NCBI GenBank assembly: GCA_964035545.1
Contig: OZ037765.1
Span: 22,691,504-22,755,503 of the forward strand
DNA from: Bugula neritina
Taxonomy: Eukaryota; Animalia; Bryozoa
DNA: 64,000 bases
Reading direction: 5' to 3'
Both the position numbers and the translations under genes were made by a program. A model generated the notes under the pieces. It was not told where the DNA came from, made no database searches, and saw only the letters and a program-made list of their open reading frames with translations. Shown piece after piece: positions 3,101-54,000 of this stretch. Numbering within the stretch: position 1 is the stretch's first letter; every line of letters begins with the position of its first letter.

Positions 3101-5070
3101 CACCACCCACCAACAAAACCTCAACACTTGCTGAGCAATTATTCAATGCACCACCAGGTTGGTTGGTTGGTCCCATAAGCTTCTTACGCAGACCATGCAG
3201 CTATATTTTTAACATAGTCAATAATTTTGCAAAAATTGAAAACATTCGTAATATTGTGCATTATTGTATGCCAGAAGTTGGAGCAAATAACATTAATTGG
3301 GGAGATATATCCTTCCTTATTTTAATTATTTTGTGATATTCAGCATATATTATCTTAGGGCTTAGTACATATATTCAGAATTCTTCTTTTAACTTTCCTC
3401 TTCATAAGGTATAGTAATATATTCTAAAAAATAGCTTATTCTTTTTTAAAATAAAGGACTATAGATTCTTATTTAATAAGCACATAAATAAGTAAAGACA
3501 AATACTTTGTAAAAAAAATTTTTCAACACTGAATTTAGGAAACGATAGAAAATATTTTAGCTGTACAATAAGAGTTTGATACTTTAACAAGAAAATAACT
3601 TTGACCTGCAGTAACACCACCATAAATATATAGATATAGTGAACTTTTAACAAGTTTATTCACTTTTACTAACTTTCATTATAGTCTAACTCTAAGCAAA
3701 TGAATGCTGTAGGACTACCCTACGATTAAAGTATTATTTCTAACTTTTTATTTTTTTTCACAGCAACTACAATAATGCTTAGTGAAGACATAATAATGAA
3801 GCTTGAAATTTATAGTTTAAAATTTCAGAGGGAGTAAGCAGTAACTCTTCAGATATGAAAGTGCCTAAGAGGCAGCGGACAGCGTTCACCAACACTCAGC
3901 TTCTAGAACTAGAGAAAGAGTTCCACTACAACAAATATTTGTGCAGATCTCGAAGAATAGAAATTGCCAAGTCTCTAAATCTAACGGAAAGACAGGTAGC
4001 TTACGAAACACAGTGTATATAATGCTACAGGGTATCATTTGCGGTCATTAATTCCGTAAATGGGATTTCCTTTTAAATCAATCTTAACTTACTTCCTTAG
4101 TGAGAAATTGATGGCAAGTAATTAACTGATTGTCACCATCACCACCAAGAAAAGATTTCACTCTATATGATGGTTTTCCTTGCCTATCACACCCACTTTT
4201 AATATTTTATTAAGCTTTAACTATCAAATAGACTAATATGCAATATTTTGATAACATATTTAAAATTATATATCTCTAGTCCTACCGAAAGCGCCTGTAC
4301 AAACTTTTATTTCGGTGCTCAATTCGAAGAAAAGTTACACAGGATGCCATTAGTTTTTGTTAACATAACACCTGCTTTACAGACACATTGTTTTATATGT
4401 CGGGATGTCAAAATAATTGTAAATATATATGCATATACTTTTTGGCATGCAATTTAACATTGTTTTGGTATTTATTTATATCCAAAAACTTTATTTTTAG
4501 TTTAACGTCGAGGCATAACTTTTAAGGCAGAGAGATACCCTGGTAAAATGTTTAAAGCTTTATATTGTGTGTATCATTTATTATTAGGTGAAAATTTGGT
4601 TTCAAAATCGGCGAATGAAGTTTAAGAAAGTTAATGCAGGGGGTTACGATGGCTCTTCCGATATGATGATGAAAGAAGATGGCTTCCATGCAGTGAGTCC
4701 AGATGCGGTCATGTTTCCTCATAATGTGGATCCATGCACCTCCATGGTTGAGCTTCCAAAGCCGTTGAACCTGGCTACAAAAGTAGATCTGCCGTATCCA
4801 TGCTATGCACCACCAGCCTCTGCTGTCCACACCTCCGCATCCAACGCCATGGGCATGAATGACTTTATGAGAAACTTTCATTACCAACCATCATATTACA
4901 GTCAATTGTCTACATCAGCTCTGGAGAGTCTTGGACAGCACCGGCAGCATACTGATAACATTCATACGTCCTCGTCAATGGCTGCTCAATATCAGCCTAA
5001 ATACTCCAACAACAATAGCATGCAGTATCAGCCAACACACTACGGCACACAGTATTACACACCTACCTAA
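134..5070 (+). CDS. Anterior Hox-class homeodomain transcription factor (Hox2/proboscipedia-like, with some Hox3-like residues), ~256 aa
   Basis: Model join(134..254,3829..3995,4588..5070) with GT-AG introns and consistent phases (1,0). Homeodomain reads [43 protein letters not shown]|[14 protein letters not shown], with an intron between Q44 and V45. [18 protein letters not shown] and RRIEIA are Hox2-like; [13 protein letters not shown] is Hox3-like. Exon 1 (MAAGLQHQ...ECRWISDQK...) is less certain than exons 2-3. Confidence 0.85.
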
Positions 5071-6202: not shown

Positions 6203-9200
6203 CTAAGTGCTTGATTGTTCAGTAGTATGAATCCGACGACGAATACTTGTATCATCTCTCGTCATATCTTGTGAATCTATTGGGGTTACACCCAACCCTG
6301 AATCTTCTGTAACACTACCAATATCAATAGTCTTACGCTCTGGTGATTGCAGACTAGTGTGAAACCCTTTTGGTGCCAACTCATTGCCATGGTTATCTTC
6401 ACTGCGAACTAGTACATCCTCATTGGGAGGCCGGCCAGGTGAGCTCGAGTCAGAATGTGATTTTAACCTGGGATCAATCTTTGATCTGAGGGCATACCAA
6501 GAAGAACTGGTAATAATAAACAGAATGTACCAAATGCAGGGGATTAGAATCACTGCTGTCGTTAGAGGCCAGTTATACATGTAATACTTGAGTCCTCTGA
6601 ATTGAGCTTTCAACACTAGTTGAGCGTTATATATTTGTAGTTGTGGATTGTCGATGTTTATAGATATGAGAGAAGTTTTCTTGTACGGACTCTCTTGGTA
6701 GTTTGTAAACAGTTGCACTTTGCGCAGTTGTTTCTGATCAGAGAAGTCTAGAAGGTAGAGCGGGGCGTAGAACAACGTGTCCAGTATTTTTAGTAGCCAT
6801 GACCGATATTTCAGCATCAGCAGACGGCTACTTGAGGTCAGCAGTGCATTTTTCTAAAAAACAGAATCAACACATTTCTATACAACTAATCTAATATATA
6901 TTACACTAAACATACTGGAGATTACTACCTGTCTATGTGCCATTTGTAATGCAAAGTAAATACAACATCATGTGAGGGAACCAAAAATACCACAAATTTC
7001 TCCAGCAACGCTAAACTACTGGCCGTGGTATGCATTAAACTAAATAATCAAGTTAATAGAATAATTTGAATTTATTTATTGGAAGATTAAGGGTTGGCCT
7101 GACAATTAATTATGCAAAGACAAGTGACTATTTATGAACAATGAATAAGGGTAAATGAATTTAAATATCAATATATATGTAAAATAGACATAAACATGCA
7201 TAGAACACAACGGAGTTTCCATATATTATTTATTCCTATTGTGGTAGAGCTACATAGTCCGGTCCTGTAAGAGTTTTAGAGGAACAGCCTATCCTGGTGG
7301 TATTACTAAAGATAGTCACAAATATAGTTGGGATTTTGTAGCATTGAAAGAGACCGGACTAGGTTACTATAGTTCAACTAGAGAGGGAAAACACCAGCTT
7401 AAGTTTGTAAGCACACCATAGGATTTGGGTTCTACTACCAAAAACTTTTAGCAACGTCACTAGTTCAGTAAAATGTTTATGGCACTGGATTAAAAATTGT
7501 TATAAAATAAAAAATAAATACAAAATGTTATATTTCAATGGTTTAGAGCACATTTTCTGGAATAGAAGTGCTAAAAGAGAAAGTTGCTGGAAGCAGCACT
7601 GAGTTGGTGGTCACTGAGTGCATTGGTTAGGGAGGGGTTGGACAAATTCTGCACTAAGTCACCCCCGACGCAGTGCTGCTTCTAGCAGTATTCGCTAAAA
7701 GAGGCTGGCTGGACCAAGCTCGTAACATATAACCAATGCTAGAACGTATCGTGTAAGTCAGTCTGCAAGAACAACAAATCTCTGGCCCATGAGCCAAGTG
7801 CACAGCTGGCTTATACTATCAGAAAACGCTAGAGGCAGCACAAAGTTTGGAGTTACACAGTGCAGTGATTAGGAGTTTGAATAATGAGAGGTAGACAATG
7901 TGCTCAGCAACCCCAAACTTTGTGCTGCATCTATCAATCTCCTGCTTATAAAACTGCCAACTAGGAACATACATTATCATAAAAGAGAGCAGAAACCATG
8001 AATGTTCCAGCCATCTGGTTCACATCAGAGTCGGGCATGTCCAGCTCCAGCTCAACGTTGTAGGATTGGCCAGGCCTAAGGAAGTGCTGCAGATCACCAA
8101 ATACAACCTCAGTTTGTAAACCTTCCACTACTACTTTCATAGTAGATCCATCCACATCTACCCTGTCCTGTTCAAACAGATTTATTATCAACTTTCAGGG
8201 AGCATTCTATTATCTTTTATCTGTCCAAATCTAGTAGTGCAGCATTTTCAAATTTATTATAGTTGAATAACAAAATGCAAATATTTTTTAAACCATGAAC
8301 TGACAAATATAATATTTATAGTATTATAATAACCGTAACATAATCTTTATAACAGAAATACAAATGGAGAAGTCAGCATAAATAAATAATAAACTGTGGT
8401 TAGCTAGATGTAGATGTGCTAGGCTTGAGATTACAATTCCCCATTTGTGATGTCACAGAGAGCACTAACCACAGTTGCTCAATCATAATGAAAAATTGCG
8501 CTCAAAATTTGTACTATTGGAATTTTCTACTAAAAAGAAACTAGGTACTAAACTTTAAAAATATAATACCCAACAGTTGTAACATGACAGCACACAAATT
8601 CACTTTTTAATCTAATTACCTATAAATCTGCTACTCTATCCTTACATGATAGTAATAATGGTAAGAAATATGAAGTCTGTTCAGGACAAATGGCTCGTGA
8701 GTCAATGCAGTTTTTTATAGTTTAATGAGCTGACAAACTTATACTACACAAATGGAATGTGCAGTAGGTAAAAGTGTGTGAAGACAGAAATGTGACGAAA
8801 AGTGACGCCCAGTAACACAAGCCTTCAGTGGTTACAGCAAAGCAGCCCACTTGTGTTTCCTGCACAAAATCCAACTTCTGCAAACTTAAAAACCACTTTT
8901 GATAAAGTCATAAAATCCCCAGAGTTGAAAATACTACACCTTAAAATATGGAAGAAATTAAATTATGCACAAGATATTTTTTATGGTTTACAAAGAGTAA
9001 ATAAAAATATATCACATTCTCACAATGCACTTTTATTAAATTACCAGATAATAAAGATTCAAAATCTTAGCTAGTGGATTTACACAAATAAAAACAAGTT
9101 TTCTTTAACAATACTTGGGAATGGTCACACAATCAGCATTAAAAGATATGACAACCTCAGTAGATTGACGTTATGATGCAACACACTTTATATATCATTC

Positions 9201-23591: not shown

Positions 23592-26500
23592 CTAGGAGTC
23601 ATAATCCCTCTGAATACCATTAAACCTTGGAAACAGGTAAAGTTTTCTCATATGAGTGAGAGTATCCCAGACTACAACCAACTGTCCTCCACTCTCTAGA
23701 TTTCTATCTATACACAATTTTCTCACTTTAGTCTGTACCTGAACAAAGAGGAAAATCTCACTATTTATACCTCACTATACTATTTATATTCTCCCTCTAC
23801 CCGAACAGGACGGAGCGGAGATAGGTGAGAAAAAAAAATCAAATTATATTCTGAATGACCAACGCCTAACACAAAAACATCTTTACTATGACTCATAAAA
23901 ATGGTGAACATTTTTAAACGAATTATCCATAAAGTCACATATAAAACTTGGTGTTGACAAAAAGAAAGCAGACACAATCTAACCGGCAAGTAAAAGTTAT
24001 ATCACATGACTGATAATAGAGACGGGTAACACCTCTATTATTAATACATTATTACAAAAACAAATTAAAAGTTAGATAATTGAAGAGAGTTAATCATAAA
24101 ATCAATCCTTTGCAAGCAGCAGATATTACTTTGAGCCATTTTCAATTTGATGGACACTTCACTTTTTCATGTCTATAATTCTAATAAAAGGTAACCAAAT
24201 TATTAATGTTAGACTTACCTGCTTGAATAGAGTGTGAAGATCATGGTGACAGGCATGTTTATACATAGAAGATACAAGAGCTCTAATCATTAGAGATCCA
24301 TACCCAGGGTGAATCTTTGATATGAATGCTACAAAAAAACACAGAGTATCGTATGGCATATTCCAAACAGTATATAACTGTACATTACACACAGTATAGT
24401 ACTGTATATTACGCACAATATAATATTGTACTGGATTTTAACGCTCTAGTAGTTATATCGTGTCATTATTATAATTGACTTAGCGTAACTTTCTAAATAC
24501 TGATTAGCTGTTGTAATTATAACTAAGCTCTTAGCGTAATGATTTTGAATTGCCTTCCTATTTTTATTGTTTGTTTTTAAGTTACTGTAATAGTTTTTGG
24601 AGTTATGTTATGTTGAGATATATAAATAAGTATGTGAGCCGAAGCTCGTCCGAAGTCGGAGCCGAAGGCACGATGTCGGAAGGACTCTGTCCGAGATCGG
24701 GCAGAGTCCTTCCGACATCGTGCCTTCGGCTCTGAACTTCGTACGAGCTTCGGACCCCCACCAGTGGCAGGAATTTTTGCAGTATATAAGTGCGAGTTTT
24801 TCCAGTCTAAATCAGTACTGCACTGGAGCTGATACATGAAGGAACCAATAAAGACTACTAATTACAATTTATCAAAGACTCTTTATTCAAGAATAATAAT
24901 TGGCATGCAGACTACTTAGTCTATTTTCATACAACCCGCAAAATCATAACAATATTGTATTGTGTTACTTACACTCCATGCTAGATTTCACTACCAGCAG
25001 GTCATCATAATTCAGTCTAGTCATAGCCTTAGCATCTTTGTCTCCGGGAACTTTAGCAAGTTGAAGTGAGATACTTTGCGTCTCTTTCTTTTGAGGTTCC
25101 CCGATATCAAATCTGTCTACACCTCTTTCACCGTAATCACTCCTCTCTGTAACATAGATTGCACAACTTTTTGTTTACTTGAAATAATGAGTAGTCAATA
25201 ATGTCTAATATGAAAAAATTAGACTACTAAAAATTGAATATAAGTTACCTAACATACTTTGAATGCCAACTATCAGAACAGGCAACTATAGGGTAACCAC
25301 AAATAATCTTTAAAATATTACCTCCACTACACACTTCCAGTATAACAACCTTTGGTTTGCCAGCCATTCCTGTGAAGTTCAAAGGGGTCAGAAGGTCATA
25401 CACATCTGTTAGTTTGACTCGTTTCAGGTCTGTACCACATATGTGGTTGTCCAGCCCTCCATGAGTCATTATAACCAACACATGACACCCCAGATCTTTG
25501 TGTTCCTCCTTTTCTACCTCAGATTTCACAGCAGACAGCATTTCCTACAAATTACCAGAAAGCAAAATATTGAAGAAAGAAGTCATATATTCTAGTCCTA
25601 TTTCTATATCCTGAATTCATTTCAATAAACCACTATTAATGCTGATAGTAATAATAATACTGTTTTGATTTGTTTACTTTAGAAACTTGGTATGCTAGCT
25701 AATGTTTATTCAAAATGTTAAACAACGCAGTTTAGTGTTGTTGGATTAACTTTCCTTAAGTTGAGACCTCAAAATGTAGAAAATAGTAAACCCCAAAACA
25801 TTACTTTGATATTATATAGCCAGATATTTTGATGTACTTTTTAACCTCTAGCAGAGAGAGTCACACTTAATTTAAGTAAAGCAGCAGCAAAAAATACCTC
25901 TGCCTTCAGGTCTGTGTGTGTCACAACATCAAACTTAAGAGTTTTCAACATGGCAGACATATTCTCAACGTCCACATCTGAACCTTTCCTACACAAATCT
26001 GGTCTCTTAACAAAGTTCATGTTGTTTATTATCAGAGCTCTTCCTCTCTTTCTAGTCATATTAAACACCTATATAACAGAGAAATACTTGTAACTTCTGA
26101 ACTGTGCGCTAAAACTACACATAGTAAAAGAAACTCACGCAAGAGAACCCTTGATGGAAAAGATTTTTGTAAAATCGGGCTAAGGACTTATTCAGATGAG
26201 ACACAGGAGCAATTACGACTGGATGCTCTTCTTAAAATTAGCAATGGCATTTCTTGTGGGGTTCGAACCCATGACTTGGTGTTTACTAAGCAAGCACGCC
26301 ATGGTCTAGGGGTCTAAACTACAGATAGTAAAATTAGGGAATACTACCATTAGATAGGATCACCTTATCAGTGTTTGAGAACAGCTGTTTTATTTTTGGG
26401 TTAATTGTTGGATTTAGTCTAAGTCTTATAAACTTCATTTCTTCAACTTCCTTTTCATCAGGGTACAGATTGTCATCATTATCAGAGAGATCACTCAGAT

Positions 26501-29500
26501 CATCATTGGCTGCTCCAGTGGTAGTTGCAAGATCTGATTGGCTACTGTTGCTAACTACAAAATACAAATTCATACACATTATTACTTAGTTACAAAGGAT
26601 AAAAAAGAAATATTATGTAATAAAGGTCAGCAGGTTGGTAGTTAGCTGTAATGCAGGCATTTTTGTGGTAAAATCAGTAATTATTTGGATTGATTACTTA
26701 ACCAGTTCCAAGTTGTTTTTTTAGCAGCATTTAAAGAACACATGCTTGCAAAAACAGGTCATTTTGTATTTACCAGAACTAGTTGAGATTTCTTCAGCCC
26801 TGCGGGTATTCAGTTTATCCACAAATTCCTCCAACCTATCAGCTTCTCTATCAGACAGTGTTTCACCTGAAACAGCGAAATATTTCAGTTGAGTGCCGTG
26901 CAATTGTCCTTATTATTCTGAATATATTATTAAGAAATTAGGAGAATTAACTTAACTACTCTCTATAAAACAGACATGCAGTAAATTGCAGTCATGGATT
27001 TATTCTACAGACACTGCAACACAATGTAAGCAAACATACATGGGTAAAGCAAAGCACTGGGTATCTCCTCATCACCACACAGAGTTTTTGAAGATCCGCT
27101 ACACAGCCTGGCCTTTTTTGGCAGAATTTTTAAAGAACGGAGGCACCACTGAGGCCGTGACACTTTCTTAGGACAAGGAAGTCCTAGCAGCAAGCAGTGA
27201 GCACAGTAGCATGTAGGAACTGGTCTACTTGCTTTCCAGATTTCTAGAACATGTCTGAGGATGTTGTTGCTGGTGGTGATAAGTCTCTCCCACATTCTGC
27301 TGACCTTGGCAGCATTAGATGACACATAGAGCAACACCTTTCTAGATTTGTAGTCATGAACCAGCTGTGTGCAGATTTCATCTTGATAGACATTGGCTCC
27401 ATTTCTCTTCACTTTAATAACAGCAGGGTCATCTGGAAACATCTCCAACAAGCCAACAGTCATCTGGTGGAAGACATAGTGTGGCAGAGCTAGACCATTG
27501 AATTGTGTCTCAATGCAGAGGAACAGGTTTTTAGGTGAAGAGTAGGAAATGTTGTAGAAATTTCTAGCAAACTGAGGTACAATAAACCATGGCTCTTCAA
27601 ACTCGACATGTATTGGACCATACAGCAAACGGAATGTTTTAAGTAAGCAGACTGCGACTTCAACATCCTGAAAGCTGTTAAATAGTGTTTCTTTCTCAAT
27701 CAAATAAAAAAGAAGACATTCCATCATCAAGCCAGTGTCAGTAAAACGACTAACCGAATCCTCGAAGTCCTGCTTCTCAACACCCATTCCAGTCTTTGAA
27801 TAGTATGGCTGGAACTTGTCAACTCTACTCTGCCATATGTCGGGATCATGATGATACAGGACACATAGAAGTTTAGTGACTTCTGTAATCTTGTGGAATA
27901 TGTATGGCTGGAGAGAATTGATATCTTTATACCACAAGACTTTGCCACAGTCATGCATGTATGTGAGAATTATGTCCAGCTGACTTGATTCAATGTGCTG
28001 AAGTTCTGTCTGTACGACTTTCAGTATTTCATCAAAAGTGCTGAACACAGAGGGGATAGAGAGAACTTTTTCATTCACTTCCTCCCAGACTGAAGGCAGA
28101 TCTTTGACAAAATGTTTACTGTTTTGAAGAAGAGAATCTTTGATCAGGTCATAAACTTCATACTTGTCATCTTTCCCCACGCCATAAATGCCCTCCTCAA
28201 GAAAAACTTTGCCAGCTGATTCACTGAAATGTTTGATTTGAGCGAATTCTCCACCCAATGCCTTCTCTTCCCTAATAATCTCTTCACACAGCTGATTCGA
28301 AGTTTCCAGAAAGTTCTTGCGAATCCTCTGAAATTCTGCATCTTGAAACTTATCTTTATGAGTAAAGATAAGTTTTGATGAACCCAGATTTGGATTAGAG
28401 AGATAGAGGTGAGACATGTAATCAAAAGCCAATCTTCTAACAGCCTCTCTGTGTGTAGATTCCTTTGAAATTTTGCTATACTGTTCCATGTTGACTACAA
28501 TGACTGGAATGCAATTCTGTCTTAGTGTTAGTTGATAGGTTATATGGTAGACCTCCTGGCCTCCCATATCAATGAGACGGAGTACTGTACCATCCACCTC
28601 AACCTCCTCAACATTAAACACCTTTGTTGTCTCATCTATCACAGCATTTGGATCTCTGTTGGTCAACACTCTTCTTCTGTCAGCATTCTGTAATGTTCTG
28701 ATTAGACTTGTTTTCCCAGCCATCGTATTACCCAGCACAGCTATTGTGGCAAATGGAATGTTTTTACCAGCACCTTTAGCCAAGTCTGTGTAATATTGTC
28801 TCACAGCATCTACTCCTCTCTTGCATACTTCTAGTGGAGGGGATGTGAGAGCATTACAACCTTTCACCACCAGGTTAAAAAGTTGAGTTAATTGGAATAT
28901 TTTAGAATCTAAGGATGCCAGAGAGTGATTGCTGGATATATTCAGTTCTCGCAGACTACTCAATGTGTACACTGAAGGTGGTAAACTGGTGAAGTTATTG
29001 TATGATATGTGAAGTGTTTCTAACTTCTGTAGACTTTGTATGCTGAAAAATATGAAATATAATTGGAGTTGTATAAATGGTTTCACACAAAAATAAATAT
29101 TAAAATTCCATCAATTACATTATAATAAACTGCTACAATGCATATACGTACATAGCTGAGCAATGCATAATAAAATAATCATAATTCATAATTAGGAGTT
29201 ATACTTCCAGTTACTGAGTACAGCATAGCATGTAAATAAGAGAATGCATTACATAACAGTAACAGTAGAACTAAATTTTATTGGTGCAGCATTAGAATAC
29301 ATCTCAGTATAGCAACCCTGTGAGATCATGTATTAAATAAACACGGTTGAAATTGATTGTTTTGGTAGTTGTTTTCCAGTCAAAACATTACTAAAAAAAT
29401 TTAATATTATTCAACATTATATTATATAATATTTAGATGAGTTTTAGTATAACTCATTTATTAAAGAAATAATTTATTAAAGACACGAGTTTCTATCAGA

Positions 29501-32500
29501 ATACACCTACTACTAGGTTTCGTACTGTTTATATTATGACTCATTACCTACTAGCAACTCAGATTCCACTCGTAAATACTCTAACTGTAAATTCAGCAGA
29601 CTACAGTAGTTTTCTTATGACAAGGAATCTAGTCGACTGAGTCAAGTAAAAAAAAAGGCAGATAACCCTGTAACATATCATAGTACTGCACCTGTTTGAT
29701 AGAGTTTTTAATAGAGTTACATTATAACAGAAACATTTTGAACTATAATATAACACGCACCTGTTTGGTAGAGTCACCAGTTCACAGTCCCTCATGTCCA
29801 ACTCTTTCAGTGATACTAAGGATGTGAATGTATTGTCAGGTAGACCTTCAGGTAGCTTAATATCTGATATATCCAACACCTCAAGATTCTTCAGTAAGGA
29901 TATGCTGTAATGTAGCATAGTGCATACACATATGAAATTGTGCATATTATCATACTTTATAGGAATATAATTATTTGATACAACGTATTAAACACTATGT
30001 GGGGCACACATGCACTACACAAGATACTTCAAGTATTAAAAATTTGTACTATAGGTCACTGTATACTGCAATATAATAATTTATTTATGGCCTGTAATAT
30101 TTGTTACAGTACAATACTGCACTATATTATGATACACACCTGTTTGGTAGTGTTGGTAAGTTACAGTGACCTATGTTCAACTCTCTCAGTAATAGTAAGG
30201 ATGTGAATATATTGTCAGGTAGACCTTCGGATAAGTGATTCCCCAATAGACCCAATACCTCCAGATTTTTCAGTAAAGATATACTGTAACATAACATGTA
30301 TATGGAAATAAAATCATGTATAATTTTCAAGTAAGAATATAGCGACGGCATGCAACTGACTGAACTTCTAATCAAATCTATTTATACGGGCAATATTTTG
30401 AGCATTTTCATCCATCTTAATGTCACGCACACATAGACTGCACAATATTTCTCAGAGATGGTTAAAAAAACATGGGAAATGAAAAAAACCGGTGGCTGAA
30501 AAAGTCAGACGAACTTCAGAATTTTGCAAATCAAAACATGAATATATAGAGTTCTTCGCTGTGAATAAGAAGCTATATGGACTGTTTAACAAGGAGATAA
30601 GAACTATAAGGTGCAAGGACAAAGAAAGGATCAAGAAGGTTGATTGTCAAAAATTAGACTTTATTAAAACAAATTTAATGGAATAAACATATATCTTACT
30701 CATTTTTGGAGGAACTGACATGCAAAGTACACATGTATTGTAAAATCTACTCCAACTATATTGTTCTAGCAATTATGTAGGTTATGAATTACTACTGTAT
30801 AGTAAGCATTGTCTTGCCTTATTCTATAACATACATATGTAATTGTATTCATACTTGTTTGGTAGAGTTTTCAGTTTACAGTACCACATGTTTAACTTTC
30901 TCAATGACAGTAAGGATGTGAATATATTGTCAGGTAGACCTTCGGATAGGTCATTGCCATATATATTCAATACCTCAAGATCCTTCAGTGAAGATAGGCT
31001 GTAATATAACATAAAGGTATATTACAATGATTTAAATAAATATAATCATTTGATACTATACATGTAATAAATGCTGATAGCAAAATGTGTACAATTCAAG
31101 TCACTTCAAATATATGAAAGTACATTATAAGCTTCCACGCAGTTATATTAACAACACTTATAACTTATATTTGTTACAGTATTATTATGGAGTCCAGGGC
31201 GGTCCAACAGTTGGCTCCAGGGCCGGATGCAGCCCCAGACTAAATCTATGTGGACTCTAGGGATCTAGAAAATAAAATTATTTTGCCTGAGTGTGTATAT
31301 ATAAATTGGAGTGGAAAATCCACTATTTAGATTTTTTATTCATATGCATGAAATAAAAGATGGGACTTCATTGTGTAATTATTCATAGAAATTTGAAATA
31401 AAGTATATTGGAAAATGCTGATGTCATGGCCCTAGCTAAAGCTAAATTTTAAATTAAAGGGGCCCTTGCCACTGAACTAATCCATTTCAGTGACCCTCGT
31501 TCTGAAAAGGCTGGACACCCTTGTTCTACAATTTAATACAATACACACCTGTTTGGTAAAGTTACCAGTTTACAGTTTTCCATGTCCAACTTTTTTAGAG
31601 ATAATAATGATGCGAATATATTGTCAAGCGGTTTCCAGCAGAGGTCATTTCCCGATATATCCAATACTTCAAGATTCTTCAGCGAAGATATGCTGTAATA
31701 CAACATAAAAATTAATACTTTTAGAGCTTTATAGTATATATTTATCATTCTACACTATAATATAACACACGCCTGTTTGGTAGAGTTAAGAGTTGACAAT
31801 CCTGCATGTGCAACTCTATCAATGATGGTAAAGATGTGAATATATTGTCAGGTAGACCTTCAGATAGGTTATTCTCTGATATATTCAATATCGCAAGATT
31901 CTCCAGAGAGAAGATGCTGCAACCAACATATAACATACAGGTATAAAATAATTGTAATCAATTTAATTACCAAATATTATTTTGGTTGAAGGAGATTAAT
32001 CAACTTGAAATTAAATTGATCGTAAATTAAAATACAATGAATCAGATAAATAACACATTTGTTACTAAAGCTAGTGTTATTGTGAAGGGAGATGACATTA
32101 CATTCCATCTAATACTAATAGCACCTTCTATGATTATAGCTTTATATTACAACTGGTCAAGTCAAGACCAGTTCTGTTCCTGCTATCGGTAAGTATACAT
32201 GTAAACTGGTACCACCCGTGGCATGCCCTCCCCTGTTTTAATTTGAGAGGCTTTAAGGGTGCTGAGACACCCTTGGATTGATGTTGCTTGTAGACAATAG
32301 AGCAAGACACAGATTGATAGAAAACCAACAATTTAGTTACTTTCCAACAGAAAAAATCCAGCCACAACCCACATAGATTCATCACACCTCTGTGGTAAAT
32401 AAGGTCACACATGCTTCTCCTGCTAATTAGCAACCAATACCCATACCAAACCAACAAAACTGTGTGATGTACATTTTGGGACTTTCTGCTTTTTATCGCT

Positions 32501-32832
32501 CTCAACATGCTTTTGTTTATTAGTTTATTACTTTGTTAACTTTCTTGAGTACATTTTATCTGTTATATCTTTGGTTACAAAGTTTTGCTTTGCAATATAA
32601 CAACATTATACCTGGCCCAGTCAGCTTTACTGTCTACTTCATATAGTCTTAGATGTGTCAGGTGGGGAAACAGAGTGTTGATATTTGGAGGAATGTCGTA
32701 CTTCAGTATAACATGAGTAACTGTATGATGTCTACTTATATCATTGATCTCTTCTATAGTGTAGTGCCTAGTGTCATTCTCCATCCACTCACCCTCGTCA
32801 GCTTCATCTATACTGGACGTGTTGAACCACAT
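23592..32832 (-). CDS. LRR-Roc-COR-caspase fusion protein (ROCO GTPase with C-terminal C14 caspase domain), ~1350 aa
   Basis: Model complement(join(32612..32832,31773..31916,31549..31692,30855..30998,30140..30283,29761..29904,27040..29042,26774..26866,26364..26554,25898..26068,25322..25544,24973..25146,24219..24328,23592..23738)). Every junction is phase-compatible and the frame is open (4053 nt). Roc motifs: GNTMAGKTSL, DMGGQEVY, THKD. COR: LPSVW...LTYMHDCGKVLWY. Caspase p20: RGRALIINN, RKGSDVD, IMTHG, GKPKVVILEVCSG. Caspase p10: DLLVVKSS, GSLMIRAL, TLTHMRKLYLFP. The start codon and any upstream exons are uncertain. Confidence 0.85.
24639..24753. repeat. 115-bp GC-rich near-perfect hairpin in a caspase-domain intron
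   Basis: ccgaagctcgtccgaagtcggagccgaaggcacgatgtcggaaggactctg pairs with cagagtccttccgacatcgtgccttcggctctgaacttcgtacgagcttcgg. Confidence 0.85.
26143..26230. repeat. Dispersed repeat, second copy at ~53626-53708
   Basis: cgggctaaggacttattcagatgagacacaggagcaattacgactggatgctc here versus cgggctaagaacttattcatttgtggcacaggagcaattatgactggatgctc at 53.7 kb. Confidence 0.7.
26245..26322 (-). mobile_element. tRNA-derived (SINE-head-like) fragment
   Basis: The minus strand has a B-box/T-arm gggttcgaaccc, but I could not fold a complete cloverleaf. Confidence 0.35.
29761..31916 (-). repeat. Five tandem 144-nt LRR exons (two LRR units each, phase 2-2)
   Basis: Exons at 31773-31916, 31549-31692, 30855-30998, 30140-30283 and 29761-29904 each encode SIxxLxNLxVLxIxxNxLxEGLPDNIFTSLxxLxxLxMxxCxLxTLPN. 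Flanking intron sequence is also similar between copies. Confidence 0.9.
31195..31523. mobile_element. Degenerate hAT-like MITE in an LRR intron
   Basis: Ends cagggcggtccaac ... gctggacacccttg resemble CAGGGGTGTCCAA-type TIRs. The 8-bp TSD is not preserved. Confidence 0.5.
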
Positions 32833-35800
32833 CCTGAACTTCTCTACAAAATAATATGTACCAGTTTAAAAATAACAATTTTGATAACCTATAACAGAAT
32901 TTTTAACACTATATACAGTATTAGCTTTATCTATGATGGAAGTGGTAAACTATAACATAATAGTAATAATTTTCTAAAAGTTATGCTACTTTTTATGTTG
33001 TAAATACTTAAGAATAAATTGTTGAACAAATTGAAATCCTGTGACATATTTGAGTGTATTTTCAGATTTTATCCACTTTGTCAAACTATGTATAACCTAG
33101 CAGCATGACTCAACCTTGTAACTGGTGCAGCAGTAGCATACTACAGCAGCTGAGAGGGTAGCCATGTTGTTCATAATTCTGTACAGAATGTGTTGTATTA
33201 CAAAATATTAGGCAAAACAATAATAATATATATTACAATATAGGTCAGTGTGATAATATAACACAAAATAATATAATATAGATGGGTAGAACAACTATAT
33301 TGCAATATAATATAGGCAAGTACAATAATATAACATTATATAATACATTATAATGTATGTCAGTATAATGATTTTATTATAATGTCGGTCACTATGATAT
33401 AACATAACAAGCACTAACAAATATGTAATACAACCAATAGCTGTAGTCAGAACACAACTCTAAGGAAAGTATCTATATTTCCTATTCCACAGATATTTAC
33501 TAGAGCTAGACCCTATTGAAAAACAAGCAATTCAACAGCTAGCTCGCTGATACTAAACCACAACACCCTATGATGCCTTTCTTTAAGACTTTTATCTTGT
33601 GTCATACACACATAACATAAAAATTAATAGATTGGTTAGAAGTGACAACGGTACTAAGTGGTGTTAATCACGCTCACTGTCGTGATCTTTGCTGCCTTTT
33701 GATTGGCTGGTTCAGCCGAATATTGGGGAGAAATTGACCATGCTCAATTGTGAAAATCGGGCGAAAATTCAGCAAAAAGCAAAATCGGCCAATAAATCTT
33801 GTGACCTAACAAATTTGGCCGACAGTTTTTCGGCAGATTTTGTTGCAAAATCAGCCTACGTACATGCAGCTTGAAAGATAGTACTTTTAGCAGAAGCATA
33901 GAGCTATCTATGTAAAGCTGTAAAACATTCATAGCCAAGAAATGTAGCACCAAAGCTTCAATATACAATTACCAGAACATACAAATACAACTAAGCGATT
34001 GCATCAAACATAACATACATGACTAGTCATAAAAGTGTCTTCAAGTTTCTTTTTTCCAAAGTTTACTATGAGGAAATGTTTTTAAAAAAATTACTGAAAC
34101 ACAAATACATGTGCTACTACCAAAATATATCTCTCCTAGAATAAGAATTTCATAGCATAGTTTGGATTTTAAGCAGCAGTAAAATTTTGAGATGTTAATG
34201 AACTATTTCTATATGATTAGGTCAAAGGCTATACCTGCTAATGGAATACAACTCCTAATTATAAAATAAGTATAAGGGACATGGGAAACCAGTCTCTAAA
34301 AGTATCAGATCAAGGTTCACTCATATAATTTCTATAGTTACTGGTTGAAGTATTTTTATATTTTACTAACTTATCACGGATTTCTCTGGAGGTGGAGTTG
34401 GAGGTGAAGTTTGAGGTTGAGGCACAGATTTATGTTGACTCATCTTGTGATCACTAGTTAGAGCTAAAATCATATTCAATAGTCTTAATTTTAACCTTTA
34501 AAATACATATTGATGAGCGTATTCCAAAGTAGTTATAAAAATATGCAAAGGCAAGTATCACTTAAAAGGCTGTGCTGTTGAAAAATGTATTGCAATAATA
34601 AAGAGGAGAGAATATAGCAATTCAAAAAATGCTGTTAAGTAGAGTAGATTGTAACCAACAAAAGGTTATCAATCAAAATCCACTGTATTTCACAAACGTG
34701 TCTTTTTTAATTTGTCAATAATTGTGAGTATCTCCAAGACGCTCACGTTGCAAACATAAATTTTTAACCCTGTTTTCTGTGACAAATCAGCCTACTATTG
34801 CCTTGTGTGGAATAGAGTAATCTCTATTAAATAAACTTTGCTGATTAACAAACTAATTCTTGTTGGTTATTGAAGATATGCAGTAATAGCAAATATAGTT
34901 ATGACATTAACTCCAAAGTTTTTTCTTCACTGATGGCAGCAGTAAAATAAATCTAGAATAAAACTAGAAACCCATTTGTAATAATGGAAGACATGAAGAA
35001 GAGCACGAGAGGTTCTAGCAGCAAAATCAGAGGCTACAAGAGGTGCACTGTTGAAGGTGGCTGCAGTAATAGGACCCATGACTCAAGAAACAACAGCAAT
35101 GCTCAATTAAAAGTAATTTCCACAGTTACTCCTACCCACATTCGAGGGTATATATTTTGAGGCTGGCCAATTAAAAAGTCATTGAAGAAAAGGGAAATTT
35201 TGATTTAGTTGGTTAGATTTTCCAGCACAAATTGGTAGACCAGTTGAGGCATCAAAACATGCCTAAGCTGTTGTTAGACTATACAAGACCTGTCAGACAA
35301 ATCAAGTTGACTTCTATAAGCCATTACTGCTTTCACAACTTTCAGAGTATCCATGGCAACATCTAGCTTCAAACCTGGTCCACTATACAAACTATCACCA
35401 CTTACTCATTGTACATTATTACACCCAGTATGTTGAAATCTTCAAGCTCACTTCTTTTACCAACAGCGCTATGATCATAATGAAATCTATTTTTTGCTGC
35501 CACAGTGTCCCAGAATGCTGACAAGCAACAATCAATCTCAGTAAGCTGCACAAGAGTTTCAAGAGTTTGCTTTGGACTGTCATTTCTCCCAAGTGGTTAG
35601 ATCGTGATTAGCTAGTGTGAAATTGAAGGCAGTGTACACGCCAAAGATCTATTGCCATATCATAGCACGCCATTAAAAATGGAAACTCAACTGCCAAGCT
35701 ATTTATGGTGAGAAAATTTTGAACAATAGTATTTACCATACTGTCTATTCTGGTACCAGCAACACTTGGCTCAGACATTATTGCGAAGAGGGAGCACAGC

Positions 35801-47400: not shown

Positions 47401-48012
47401 ATAGAGACTGTGCTGAGCTTCACTAAAACCTCCGCTCCTGGTAGGCTGAGTGACTAGTGGTAGAGTTGTTGTGGTAACTTGTTTATTCTCCGTCAGTATC
47501 CCTCACAGCTGTTATAGATAAAGATGTTGAAGTAAATGTGTTATAGTAGTCATTGTTTACCTCTCCGCTTATTCTAAGACCAATCTATTTATTTTTCATG
47601 TCTTTTAAAATTTAAGACTCCCAGTTTAACTCAAGACAAATGTGAAAAGTTGAAAATGTGTAATAATGAAATGTTGAGGGTTGGTTGTAGCTAGGCTACA
47701 GGTGGGACTAGGCTTGTTGTCAGTCACACTGTATTCTGCAGCAAGGAGTATATCTGATGAGTGGTCTAGCGGTGACTCCAAACAAGACGAAGAGAATAAC
47801 CTGGTGGGTCAGTCTTCTCTTATGGTTGCTGCCGGGGCCTCCAATAGATCAAGTCCCTCTACTTCGTACAGCTCTCCCACTTCCCCACCCGTCACGAGTC
47901 CAACCACTCTACCAACTTATCCTTCCTCTAAGCTCAGCAAAGACAAAAATGACAAAGACGAAAAAAGTAAGCAGTCACTGGTTTGGACTTAACAACTATT
48001 GCAATATATATA

Positions 48013-48049
<37 letters not shown>

Positions 48050-51000
48050 AGCTGGTGATAGATGTATAAGGACTTTCATTTCAGCCACAGTCTGCACTAC
48101 GTTATGTGTTACTGAGCTGTAAACATTAAGTGGTTCAATAATGTTGCCATGATGAATATAATTATGTATTTAAACTGTTAGCAAAATCTTGTTATATGCA
48201 TGTTGACTGCAGGTAAAGTGTTTGTGTACGATGGTGATGTTGCCTACCGGGATGGACTATATCGAGTAGTCATAGCAGCTAAGAACGCTACAGTGGGAGT
48301 TATTCTAGTGAGTTGGTAAATGTATCATATAGCAACAGGCATTTTAGGATTAAATGTTTTTCTGCAATGCTCTGCGCAGGGGTTAAAGTGTTGGTCTAAA
48401 AATCAAAGGTTTTGGAAATACGTTATATTCTATGGCTTACTTTTGAAGCTGTACTGTGATTGCTGTCTATATATTATATATATATATTATATTATTATAT
48501 ATGATTATATGATTATATATATGGGTATCTATTATAGAGCAATAACTGGTGAATAAATTATTCTTCAAAAAATATACATTAGCAGCTAGTTTGTTTTGTG
48601 TTGTACTGAATATTTACTGTATCTAATAATCAAATCCACTACTTTTTGTATCAAACTTTATTGTTGGTTTCAGGAAGAAGTTCTTAGAGTGTTCTACATG
48701 CCACCTGAACCTCACAAATTCTATCTCTCTTTCATAACAAATAATGCAGGTAACTTTTTTGCTGCTTGTAGATAGGCACTTAGGCTATTTAGCTTTGGTA
48801 CTTGTTAGCTCACATTAAAGTATTGTACACCAATGATTATAGGGCAGTGCAGTTGTACCCATATCTGCATATAGATTGGTTTAACCTGACAATTGTATAC
48901 TTCTGCTTCAATGTATAGTGAATGTAGGATCTGGATACCAATTTATCTTTCTTTAATTAAGTCATGCTAGATATATAAATACTCGGCGATTGATTGTGGA
49001 AATTTTATTTAAAGAAACTTTTTTATTGCTATTGATTTACTTAAGCCAGGCAAGGACAAAAAATTTTTAGGTTGCTAGAAAATTTGGTGTAAAATGATTT
49101 TAATTTGTTAAATATGTCTCACTGCTGCTATGTAATTAAGAGGAAAATTATCCTGGAAATATTAAAATACTGTAACAAAACTATTTGTTCTGAAAAGAAA
49201 CTATAGAACTTATGTCCATACATTTTTTGCAAATTTTAGAGGAAATTAGACTTGATGAACGTTATCCAATTAGGCATCAGTTGGATACTAAAATTCAAAT
49301 ATTTGACACAATACCGAGTTTATATCTGAGAGGTAAAGAAAAGGAACGGGGAGAGCTCACGATATATATAGATAGTCTGCTGTAAGTAGAAAACTTGCCA
49401 ATCCCATCTTCTAGCTCGATAAAGAATAAAATGTTTTGACATGAACAATCTGCAGATATAACCTACAGTGCTAAAAAGCTAAAGACACATCAACTGTTAA
49501 TATTATGGTTAAAAAAAATGTTTCTTGTGATAACGTTGTGTTCAGCTACGGACAACTTATTTAATACTTTTGGATTAGGTTGTGTTGAAATTTGTTATAG
49601 ATTTGTTTTTGTACCAGAAATTTGATGAGGTTATTTGATGATGGGATCACAAAGGGCAACTTTCATTTATATTTATTTTTAGCAAATAATTTAGTGTTTT
49701 TTTTGCTTTTTTAACATTTTAACATAATGTAGCACATGGTTAATAACATGAAAATTTTTGATCAGTAACTATGTTTGATTAACACTTTTAAATCATTCAT
49801 CAGAAACCTTTGTAAGAATTCATGTTGTTGGTCAAAGTTTTTAAAGTTAAATTTTTTGTAGACTTTATAAAACCATTGAACTTTTATATGTTTTGCTACA
49901 TTATTTGTAATAATTTAGTTATTTTAGATCTTTGTAAATAATTTTATGCAGTAGTCCCTGAACTATAATAAGATAAATCTCAATGGCTATTGCAGACGCT
50001 CATTTGAAAAATGTTGTGTGTACATGCAAAACCACAAATAATTCATTTTCTATTGTTAAACTAAATGCTCTGTGTTTCCAGGCCCGTGCGAGCATCGGCC
50101 AGAACATCTGTAAGTAATTGTGAAGACATTGCAGTGACGAGGGAGACTCTGGTACACGACTGTATGAAGGCAGCTCTTACCAAGTTTGACTTGAACCCTG
50201 AAGATATTGATGACTACGTTATGATTACTGTACTGATGGACAAAGCAGTGATACACAGAAAACTCCAGCCTACTGAATGTCCATTTAGCATAATTCAAAC
50301 GCTTGCAAAGGTTTGTTATCAGTTGTCATACTTTTCATGATTTAAGTCACACATTCTCACCTTCTGGTTGCATAGGTTGTTACTAATTTAGATTGTACTT
50401 TGTAGATTAGGTTTTTTAGGAAAAAATTATTGTGCAATAATGCCAAGGGTCATCATTTTAAACATTGTCAACACTTTTGTTCGCTAGCAACGGCCATAAT
50501 TCCCCTGTTGTATATGGTAGAACTTGGCAAAATAAATGGCACAATTTTGCAATACCTTGTATAATTGGGTAGTCAAACATTTTTTATGAAACAACTGGAA
50601 AATGTATTGTAATACTCAAAGTAAACAACAGCTATGTATGTATATATTTATGAAGTGGTAGTTGGGATATTTTTTTTTTTCTAAACAACATTGAACACTA
50701 TAATTTATAACCCATGTTCACTTAGCAGCTTTATAGAATAAATATGTGCACTTGGCCACATTGAAATCATATTATCCATCACACCACTCTCACAAATGTA
50801 GATTACATAAGTTTACGAGTCCTAATTCTGTTATATGAAAAAAATTGTGCAAATGCATATACTCTTTGCTAAATGTATGTAAGACGGTAATAATTCTATT
50901 GGATGGATTGGATGTACTTTTAACTTCCAGGAATCTCTGTGTCGAGCAAGAATGACTAGGTTTTACATACAGCTCAAAAACGATCCACATGGCTCAATGA

Positions 51001-54000
51001 TTTCTTTATTTGTTGGAAATTTACCCACATATGTATCACAGCGTCAGTACAAGAAGATACTTTTAGACATCATTGGACCAGGTTAGTCCATAATATGCGT
51101 TTTCAAATTTGTATCTGTTAAGCTGTTATTACTTGTATGCATACGAATTGATTTAATTTGAAAATTGAAAAATGGCAACGTGATTGCATGCTACATGCAA
51201 CGTGTCCATAGGCAGTTTTAACTTTAAATATGCTGGTATATTGGTTCTATTACAATGAGCCAATTATTGAATAAACAAAGTTTCACTCAATCTCTATTTT
51301 AGTCTCGAAACTTCAAAACTGTTAAAACTACTTGCAGTTGAAAGTTAAGCACTTTAGTTACTTATATTTGCTAGAACTATTTGAGGCTTTGATGTTTTAA
51401 TATAATATAGGTGTCACAATACTCTATTTTTGTTTTCATTTAATAAAATTTCATCCAATGTGTTCTTACAGTGTTAGAATATAATAGGATTTAGATTGTT
51501 GCTGTAGCTATGCTGTACACGCACATATAATATTTATACAGAGAATTTATGGACTCTATTGGAGGTTATATACTACGAATACGGGTCTTTAGTAATCATC
51601 TACAACTCCCGGGAGACTGCTACTCGCGTGTTTAAGTTACTGCAGAACGCATCTTATGATGACAAATCACTCTACGTTATGCTCTTACCCAATATACAGG
51701 TAGTATTGTGATGTGATTATGCAGTATAATTACTAGCAAATTATACACATACACATATATGAGCAGGGAGATATAGAAGCATAGTTACCCGGCATGCAGT
51801 CTTTAGTATGCGCTATGTTCATTCAGCTGTAACATCAAATTTTATGGTCATTAAATTTTAACTTCAGTCTCCATAAGTTGATGTAAGAGTCATTTTCTGG
51901 GTCAACATTCAACACTGTATGACTTTTCACTAGTAAAAAAGTTAGCTACTAGTAGGTCGTGCAAGTTAATAAATGAGTATTTACAATGTGAAGCTGGATT
52001 GTTGTAAATTTTGTTTTCATATGAATAGATTCAAGTTACTATAAGTTATATTGTTTACATCACTTTCTAATCACGTCTTTAAGTATATATGTTATCTATA
52101 CGTAGTGTTACTTTTGTTCATAAATTATCAGATTACAAAATATTTTAACAACTAGTTGTGTTATTGGCATAAAACTATATATGATTTTATGTCTATGTAT
52201 TGCTGTTATTTGTATTAACACCTTTATTTTGTGTTGACTGCAGCCACATATGCTCTCTGATAAAGAGACACCACTTCTGGTGTTTGTGAACACTCGGAGT
52301 GGCGGTTGTCAGGGAGGACAACTTATTACAGGATTCCGGAAAGTTCTCAACCCTCATCAAGTATTTGATCTCAGTAATGGTGGACCATTGCCTGGGTGAG
52401 TCATGTGCTCATATAGTCAATATCACTTCTTTCATACTGTCTGCCATATTGACTGGCAGTTAAGCTTACTTTGAGATATGTCTAATAGCGAACTCCTAAA
52501 ACTGAAAGGATTTGTCTTCTTTTTGGGATTTTAAAACTTGGAAGCACAACAAAAGTATATAGCTTGAAATTATCATAAAGAATAAAATACATGTTAATTT
52601 TCAAAAAGTTTCTACAAAATTTGTTTAACACTTTTAATCAGCAGTTATGCTGAGTTAAAATGTTTATATGAGCCAATTTGAAATATTTGACAAAAATTTG
52701 CTCATCATTATTTATCTAACATTTTTTACATTAAACATCTGTGTTTTATGGGATTATGAATATTTTCCACTTGCTGTTCTGTGTACTTTGGCATCAAAAA
52801 GAAGACAACTCCGAATAGACAATAAAATAATAACGTTGAAACAAAATTGCCTAATTGCAGGCCACATGCAATCCCCCTCTCTCCCACCCACCCATTTTTA
52901 CCTGTCTGTATTGGTGAATTATATTGTAGAAATGATGTCATGTATAATAGCATTGTTTAACAAAAGGCTTGTGTAACAAAATAATTTCTTCAAGTACTCC
53001 CGCCTTTTTGCTACGGTTATTTAGTTATTATTAAAATAAAACCGTTACATTTCTAAGAAAGTATGGAGGCCTGGTGGTGAAATCATGAAACACTTATAAA
53101 TAGCCTTGTGTTAAATGTTGTTGAGCCTCTCTGCTCCATGCCTCTCTCTACTGCCAGCTTATAAACTTTAAATTATATGAAATACTTCATTCATCAACTG
53201 AACCCCGGTATCTAGTTAGTGGGGAGGGGGGGGGGGGGTAACCGGAACTTATTACACATTTGTTCTTTCTGTGATTATGGCTCAGTCTACTCTGCGTGCC
53301 TAGAGTTGTAAAGTTGTTGGCTGTAAAAATTGGAAAGTTATACATTTGTAAAACTTTCTAAGTTGCTTAGCAACTCACAAAACTTTTCACAACTAATAGG
53401 GGCCTAAGTGTGTTCTCTCACTCTCAACACCTTCTGAAACCGCGCTAGAGGGTTTTTTTTTCTTCACCTCGTGTTTTGTGTTTTTTTGAAGTTATTTGAA
53501 CTTCATTTTACGTAAACCACATAGCTTTTTGTTGCAAATTTAGACTTTAAACAGTTGCATAATAAAGTATGTGGCTATACTTGTCTTATATAAAACTCGC
53601 ACAAGTTTATAGTCGCCATCCCTGTGAGAGCCCCTGGTGAAAAAGTTTTTTAAGCGGGCTAAGAACTTATTCATTTGTGGCACAGGAGCAATTATGACTG
53701 GATGCTCATATGTTTCAGCTTGTATGTGTTCCGTAATATCAAGAATTACAAGATGCTTGTTTGTGGTGGTGATGGGACAATAGGCTGGGTTCTTCAATGT
53801 TTGGACAATGTTGGTCAAGATGCTGTGTGTGACGCCCCGCCAATTGCTATATTTCCCTTAGGAACTGGTTAGTAGAATATGTAACAACATAAGTTTTATT
53901 GAAAAATCGTTAGTAGGCAGACTGTAAAAATAATACATTTATTACAATCCAGGCTTAAATACTTATCTTTACTGACTGTTTATAGATTTTGTGACATTTA

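Follow-up and report, generated by a model that had tools for sequence, protein, structure and literature searches.

A 64-kb window of the Bugula neritina genome (contig OZ037765.1) contains a minus-strand gene that joins leucine-rich repeats (LRRs), a Roc GTPase, a COR domain, a linker and a caspase, in this order, in one frame of 1,350 residues. The fusion gene is real, spliced and transcribed. The gene model is built from 14 exons, located by their positions in the window (Table 1); profile and structure searches were done exon by exon. As the initial annotation proposed, the exons splice in frame into a single stop-free open reading frame, which ends with the stop codon at 23594-23592. All exons have an AG acceptor, and all donors are GT except that of exon 2 (31773), which is GC. 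We regard L001, a public metagenome sequence collinear with the window along 19.5 kb (84-91%), as a second haplotype of the locus. It keeps 14 of the 14 exons, all with GT-AG introns, and its 1,350-residue frame is open. A pseudogene, as the GC donor might imply, is rejected because the same donor is GT in L001 and the ratio of nonsynonymous to synonymous differences (pN/pS) between the two haplotypes is 0.23 outside the LRRs. No second Roc or caspase gene was found within the window.

Transcription across the Roc-COR/caspase joint was assessed from assembled contigs of four probable RNA runs belonging to four studies. The run type was guessed, but joints spliced at canonical intron ends are expected of RNA. 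The joint 27040>26866, which skips 173 nt and bypasses a genomic stop, is present in contigs of all four runs. It uses the phase-1 donor at 27040, as the initial annotation proposed. Further joints are seen at 26364>26068, 25898>25544, 25322>25146, 24973>24328, and 24219>23738; the joints compared with the contigs lie between exons 7 and 14, and the depth of the introns in the RNA contigs is low. The joint 26774>26554 is absent among the contig rows listed, but we infer its existence from the length and depth of one 372-nt contig (X6 record 19). This contig covers exon 9 at a depth of 68, which equals that of the 27040>26866 joint. A stretch made of 44 nt of exon 10, all of exons 9 and 8, and some 42 nt of exon 7 would have its length. 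At seven positions the contig departs from exon 9, as does haplotype L001. Of the series 27040->26866->26554->26068 suggested as a check, the outer two junctions are thus found in contigs and the middle one is deduced from a single contig.

RefSeq proteins of Watersipora subatra contain LRRs, Roc-COR and a caspase in one chain and provide independent support for the fusion. Their sequence past the last COR cysteine matches exons 8 and 9. Two separate genes, with the Roc-COR gene ending at the stop at 27005, are rejected by the RNA joints and the conserved linker exons. An assembly chimera is likewise rejected, as the independent assemblies L001 and L002 and the Watersipora fusions concur.

In the large exon, Pfam detects LRRs, a Roc domain (E 4e-7), and a weak COR-A match (E 0.012). 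The Roc domain spans about 28753-28109, with the P-loop Lys424 at 28714-28712, the G3 Asp472 at 28570, and the G4 Asp544 at 28354. Motifs G1, G2, G3, and G4 were all located and are near-invariant in 19 homologs. The NTPase is Roc, and neither a NACHT nor an NB-ARC ATPase. The AlphaFold model of the large exon has a predicted local distance difference test score (pLDDT) of 87. In Foldseek it matches LRRK1, LRRK2, and the C. tepidum LRR-Roc-COR protein with E values of about 1e-21, as well as the isolated COR structure 3dpt (1e-9) and the Roc-COR structures 3dpu and 6hlu. Given these COR and Roc-COR matches, the model indicates that the COR domain is real, though poorly seen by Pfam. A Roc domain with intact G1, G3, and G4 motifs followed by COR, as initially annotated, is hence supported by Pfam, the motif positions, and the Roco fold match. 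The Cys-rich segment that had been listed as a part of its own is present, but it constitutes the end of COR. It contains Cys927, Cys930, and Cys969, and an intron of phase 1, at 27040, interrupts the codon of the fourth conserved cysteine, Cys982.

The linker between COR and the caspase has a length of 95 residues. It is unstructured after a helix in the model of a Watersipora fusion protein (pLDDT <50 at 750-779). The acidic motif [D/E]-x-S-D in the linker is kept in most bryozoan members checked and may be a processing or phosphorylation site. Peptidase_C14 of Pfam matches exons 10 and 11 (E 4e-10 and 9e-10), and the catalytic His1161 and Cys1205 are both kept. The caspase of the Watersipora homolog resembles CED-3 and caspases-3/6/7/8/9 in sequence and fold. 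Pfam finds no CARD, DED, PYD, or death domain in exons 1, 2, and 7-14; exons 3-6 are LRR cassettes.

The window and L001 differ unevenly along the protein. The pN/pS ratio is 0.16 in Roc, 0.20 in COR, 0.45 in the linker exons, 0.30 in p20, and 0.07 in p10. At the exposed, concave positions of the LRR β-strands, 33% of residues differ and pN/pS reaches 1.6-1.9. The fraction of differing residues is 9% in the rest of the LRRs (p 3e-5 versus the concave face) and 6% outside the LRRs (Fisher p 5e-9). These exposed positions also rank with the most variable by entropy in 20 LRR cassettes from seven loci. In addition, the number of same-phase 144-nt cassettes, of which this copy has five, differs between paralogs. 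The concave face of the LRRs is fast-changing, and the remainder of the protein is conserved.

With a diversifying LRR face and conservation elsewhere, the protein is best read as a cytosolic, probably pathogen-directed receptor-protease that holds LRR sensor, Roc-COR switch and caspase in a single chain, a reading that we regard as moderately probable. The ligand of the LRR face would be variable and would most likely come from an invader; its binding would shift the nucleotide cycle of Roc-COR towards a COR-mediated dimer. The C. tepidum Roco protein is monomeric when bound to GTP and dimeric when bound to GDP or nucleotide-free (PMC5714945). By analogy, the dimer would correspond to the GDP-bound or empty state, not to the GTP state. 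It would bring two flexibly tethered caspase domains together and activate them as in initiator caspases, with no adaptor. A cut in the acidic linker may then release the protease, and the outcome would most likely be cell death or processing of an immune substrate. On account of the GDP-bound or empty dimer of the C. tepidum protein, and because human MASL1 gains toxicity when it lacks GTP (PMC3995007), GTP is favored as the resting state of the switch. The GTP-switched single-chain receptor of the initial annotation thus survives as the best reading of the fusion, but the direction of its switch may be inverted.

Several observations weigh against this mechanism or its generality. The majority of the matched RNA contigs are only 85-95% alike to the window; paralogs are therefore expressed too, and some of the RNA joints are theirs, contigs having been accepted at 85% likeness. 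At the LRR face, pN exceeds gene-wide pS only marginally (p 0.05 with the three most variable positions, 0.32 with all five), so relaxed constraint or gene conversion can account for part of it. One Watersipora member (P0089, XP_067948342.1) combines a degenerate P-loop and no Pfam Roc match with a canonical caspase pocket, and is possibly a pseudo-GTPase. Finally, two of the three residues that form the S1 pocket are changed in this copy. Arg179, Gln283, and Arg341 form this pocket, which fixes Asp specificity in caspases (PMC2064784). Here, Arg179 is kept, Gln283 is replaced by Glu (Glu1203), and Arg341 is replaced by Ile (Ile1271). The active-site motif reads EVCSG, which departs from QACxG. 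The pocket is not of the para-/metacaspase type either, which is acidic with Asp at 283, Asp/Glu at 341, and no Arg179 (PMC2064784); this copy has Glu at 283 only, Ile at 341, and an Arg179. A full p20+p10 caspase with the His-Gly and Cys dyad is thus present as annotated, but its S1 pocket is largely substituted. The Asp specificity of this copy is doubtful. With Gln283 and Arg341 substituted, a pocket of Arg, Glu, and Ile (for Arg, Gln, and Arg) predicts weak or non-Asp specificity.

The same two substitutions, both in the S1 pocket and both shared by the paralog L048, would fit a weak or inactive caspase that serves as a scaffold or a cFLIP-like partner of active members, with sensing and switch unchanged. 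We consider this unlikely. All members examined retain the His-Gly and Cys, and the Glu form characterizes a whole clade (7 of 10 fetched genes), most of which have Arg341. Moreover, p10 is the part most conserved between the haplotypes, and para-/metacaspases use an acidic residue at position 283 for their own pocket. Another possibility, to which we give slightly less credence still, retains the biochemistry but takes the input from the animal itself, as colony allorecognition or a developmental cue such as polypide regression or metamorphosis. Bryozoans are colonial and show allo-incompatibility (PMC8195603), and self/non-self polymorphism would also be consistent with the strong differences between haplotypes on the LRR face. 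However, a large, dispersed multigene family with varying cassette number suits pathogen sensing better than a single allorecognition locus, and the modeled exons show neither a signal peptide nor a membrane segment.

It is very improbable that the main product is a caspase-less, MFHAS1-like LRR-Roc-COR protein ending at the stop at 27005, with the fusion as a minor splice form. An AATAAA directly after this stop (27007-26999), kept in L001, could provide an intronic poly(A) site, but AT-rich DNA makes such a hexamer cheap. The stop itself is lost in L001 (TAG>TGG), the joint that bypasses it occurs in all four RNA studies with low intron depth, and the linker exons are under purifying selection and conserved in the Watersipora RefSeq fusions.

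The gene belongs to a family. The large exon as a query retrieved about 30 distinct relatives with 45-95% identity in JGI samples, and more relatives with 30-40% identity from other sources. Caspase exons lie downstream in 10 of the 10 paralog or allele genes fetched with enough flank. Named members are found in Bugula neritina, one of them labelled CASP8, and in Watersipora. Position 283 is Glu in seven of the fetched genes and His in three, and it is Gln in Watersipora, whose members have both QACxG and the canonical S1 residues. Position 341 is Arg in most paralogs and Ile in this copy and L048. The bryozoan family is expanded, and its similar Roc-COR backbones carry at least two types of caspase.

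The two halves of the protein differ in their relationships. The His-type paralogs are 69-81% identical to this copy in Roc-COR and 38-41% identical in the caspase. L048 shows the reverse, with 52% identity in Roc-COR and 80% in the caspase. Because these identities disagree, the distances suggest that the caspase module was replaced at least once within the family. The caspase data reject the set nearest in Roc-COR as a clade (p 1e-8), a group that was named after seeing the identities. The Roc-COR data do not reject a single His-type clade (p 0.33), so one module replacement suffices, and the conflict in tree shape between Roc-COR and caspase is half shown. In JGI contigs of another organism (L005, L007, L023, and L038), a nearly intronless LRR-Roc-COR frame is followed by a caspase frame. 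L005, L007, and L038 (33% identity in Roc-COR) were not counted as fusion transcripts, as a stop and a gap of about 250 nt, probably an unspliced intron, separate the two frames.

The architecture has precedents, although the initial annotation knew of no characterized animal protein of this kind: they are amphioxus and Watersipora models and two papers, on amphioxus (2008) and on bacteria (2021). Database models with LRR, Roc, COR, and caspase exist in Watersipora and amphioxus, at least 12 of them in amphioxus. The hits in ESM Atlas include no cluster with the architecture, an absence that carries no weight. In a profile search, Branchiostoma floridae XP_002614028/C3XQ16 contains LRR, Roc, COR-A, COR-B, and caspase domains, like the bryozoan gene in domain order. 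Several Branchiostoma genomes contain at least 11 further such models, along with siblings whose C-terminal domain is GT4, OTU, or death. For example, P0217, P0220, and P0108 end in a GT4 glycosyltransferase, an OTU deubiquitinase, a death domain or a caspase, some combined. Zhang et al. (2008) put forward 'LRRs-caspase' proteins of amphioxus as a short route between pathogen recognition and apoptosis, naming no GTPase (PMC2575513). These have LRRs and a caspase with QACXG in one chain and would link recognition directly to apoptosis; they may correspond to the amphioxus models found here. Three ENA proteins (P0253, P0254, and P0256) show another LRR-caspase architecture, in which LRRs, PF12534, and a caspase occur without Roc.

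The amphioxus caspases have a canonical QACRG and directly follow COR without the bryozoan linker, whereas the bryozoan copy has EVCSG and a linker. The bryozoan genes group by themselves with strong support (100) in the Roc-COR tree. The amphioxus caspase carriers lie among amphioxus Rocos without a caspase, in a clade whose effectors also include GT4, OTU, and death domains. The approximately unbiased test does not reject a clade uniting bryozoan and amphioxus genes (p 0.157), but the differing linkers and caspase motifs favor separate fusions. Kaur et al. (2021) listed the caspase among at least 24 effectors of bacterial LRR-AP-GTPase(Roc)-COR proteins (PMC8195603). Like the bryozoan family, these proteins have fast-evolving LRRs, Roc-COR, a variable C-terminal effector, and several paralogs per genome (PMC8195603). 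They differ in being prokaryotic and known computationally only, the bryozoan caspase is of the animal p20/p10 type, and their Roc-COR domains are far from the bryozoan ones on the tree. The variable-effector Rocos of amphioxus may be viewed as an animal parallel of these bacterial systems.

Among annotated animal Rocos, the vertebrate LRR-Roc-COR protein MFHAS1/MASL1 is the nearest by features and structure (TM-score 0.83 to an MFHAS1 cluster), but it is a single gene without a protease. One fish MFHAS1 fragment lies near the amphioxus rows of the Roc-COR tree, with the bryozoan clade apart and long branches. Brown algae show a ROCO expansion with LRR exon shuffling (PMC4104024). The Ectocarpus ROCO LRR-GTPases likewise have same-phase LRR cassette exons and are proposed immune receptors, although each exon encodes one 24-residue repeat rather than the two of a 144-nt exon here, and no caspase is reported (PMC4104024).

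A functional comparison extends to other nucleotide-switched receptors. NLR inflammasomes and the Apaf-1 apoptosome combine sensor repeats, a nucleotide switch, and a proximity-activated caspase. The bryozoan protein differs from them in having a Ras-like GTPase instead of a STAND ATPase, the caspase in the same chain, and no detected CARD, DED, or PYD. The bryozoan genes may, more tentatively, form an adaptor-free Roco repertoire that is diversified at both ends, by shuffled hypervariable LRR cassettes and by exchangeable caspases whose S1 pockets are rewired at position 283 (Gln, His, or Glu) and position 341 (Arg or Ile), including non-Asp animal caspases. Such a repertoire would be a GTPase counterpart of the inflammasome, independent of the amphioxus and bacterial fusions.

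The architecture was thus anticipated computationally, and no such fusion has been experimentally characterized in the literature searched. That literature, which omits most subscription papers, holds neither a description of the bryozoan family nor an experiment on any Roco-caspase. Within it, the bryozoan expansion, the exchange of caspase modules, and the altered S1 pockets appear undescribed. The family points to an uncharacterized pathway of innate immunity or death in a phylum that has been little studied, and to natural caspases whose specificity is altered. If the caspase reports the dimer state, Roco biology gains a direct and easily measured output. One natural protein would then allow a test of which nucleotide, GTP or GDP, drives Roco dimerization, a point long disputed and relevant to LRRK2.

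The start of the gene differs from that initially assigned, ATG 32832. This codon sits 11 nt behind a phase-1 acceptor at 32843. The paralogs L047 and L048 have the same-phase acceptor and Ile/Leu at the Met position; the ATG is therefore probably internal, and exon 1 is probably preceded by another coding exon. Comparison with L001, L047, and L048 gave no convincing candidate for it. The N-terminus of the Watersipora protein P0055 (XP_067945196.1) has the MGxxxS pattern that is typical of N-myristoylation, followed by an acidic extension, and suggests what the missing first exon may contain.

Table 1. Exons of the LRR-Roc-COR-caspase gene and other genes in the window.
Feature	Position	Strand	Remarks
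Exon 1 (first modeled; N-terminal cap domain)	32612..32843	-	phase-1 acceptor at 32843, common to paralogs
LRR cassette exon 1, 144 nt, phase 2-2, two repeats	31773..31916	-	GC donor in window, GT in L001
LRR cassette exon 2, 144 nt, phase 2-2	31549..31692	-	
LRR cassette exon 3, 144 nt, phase 2-2	30855..30998	-	
LRR cassette exon 4, 144 nt, phase 2-2	30140..30283	-	
LRR cassette exon 5, 144 nt, phase 2-2	29761..29904	-	
Large exon 7 (2,003 nt): last LRRs and cap, Roc, COR, Cys-rich end of COR	27040..29042	-	
Linker exon 8, 93 nt: helix after COR, kept in Watersipora fusion proteins	26774..26866	-	joint 27040>26866 in 4 runs
Linker exon 9, 191 nt: acidic stretch with [D/E]-x-S-D, then basic segment conserved before caspase	26364..26554	-	
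Caspase large subunit, first exon (exon 10)	25898..26068	-	Arg179-equivalent Arg1103 at 25990-25988
Caspase large subunit, second exon (exon 11)	25322..25544	-	His1161 (25463), Cys1205 (25331), Glu1203 (25337)
Inter-subunit linker and small-subunit start	24973..25146	-	
Caspase small subunit	24219..24328	-	Arg341-equivalent is Ile1271 (24314-24312)
Last exon: small-subunit end and stop codon	23592..23738	-	
Homeodomain (homeobox) gene, end	4588-5070	+	
Seipin gene	6203-6817	-	
Diacylglycerol kinase with RA domain	about 47700-55900	+	

Repeats are found in and around the gene. Intron 12 contains a near-perfect inverted repeat (24639-24753) with 39-nt arms and 18-nt outer arms, within an insertion absent from L001. 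It looks like a miniature inverted-repeat transposable element. The same segment scores 44 bits against the mir-31 precursor model, for which the family threshold is 51, and the score is probably due to the hairpin. Intron 9 contains, at about 26112-26333, a repeat with a tRNA box-B-like motif between 18-nt direct repeats. This repeat has a very high RNA-contig depth and a partial second copy at 53626-53707, and is probably a tRNA-derived short interspersed nuclear element. The region 3' of the gene, compared from 21662 to 11231, is structurally polymorphic, the window carrying several kilobases of insertions relative to L001 (20837-15981 and 14871-12666).

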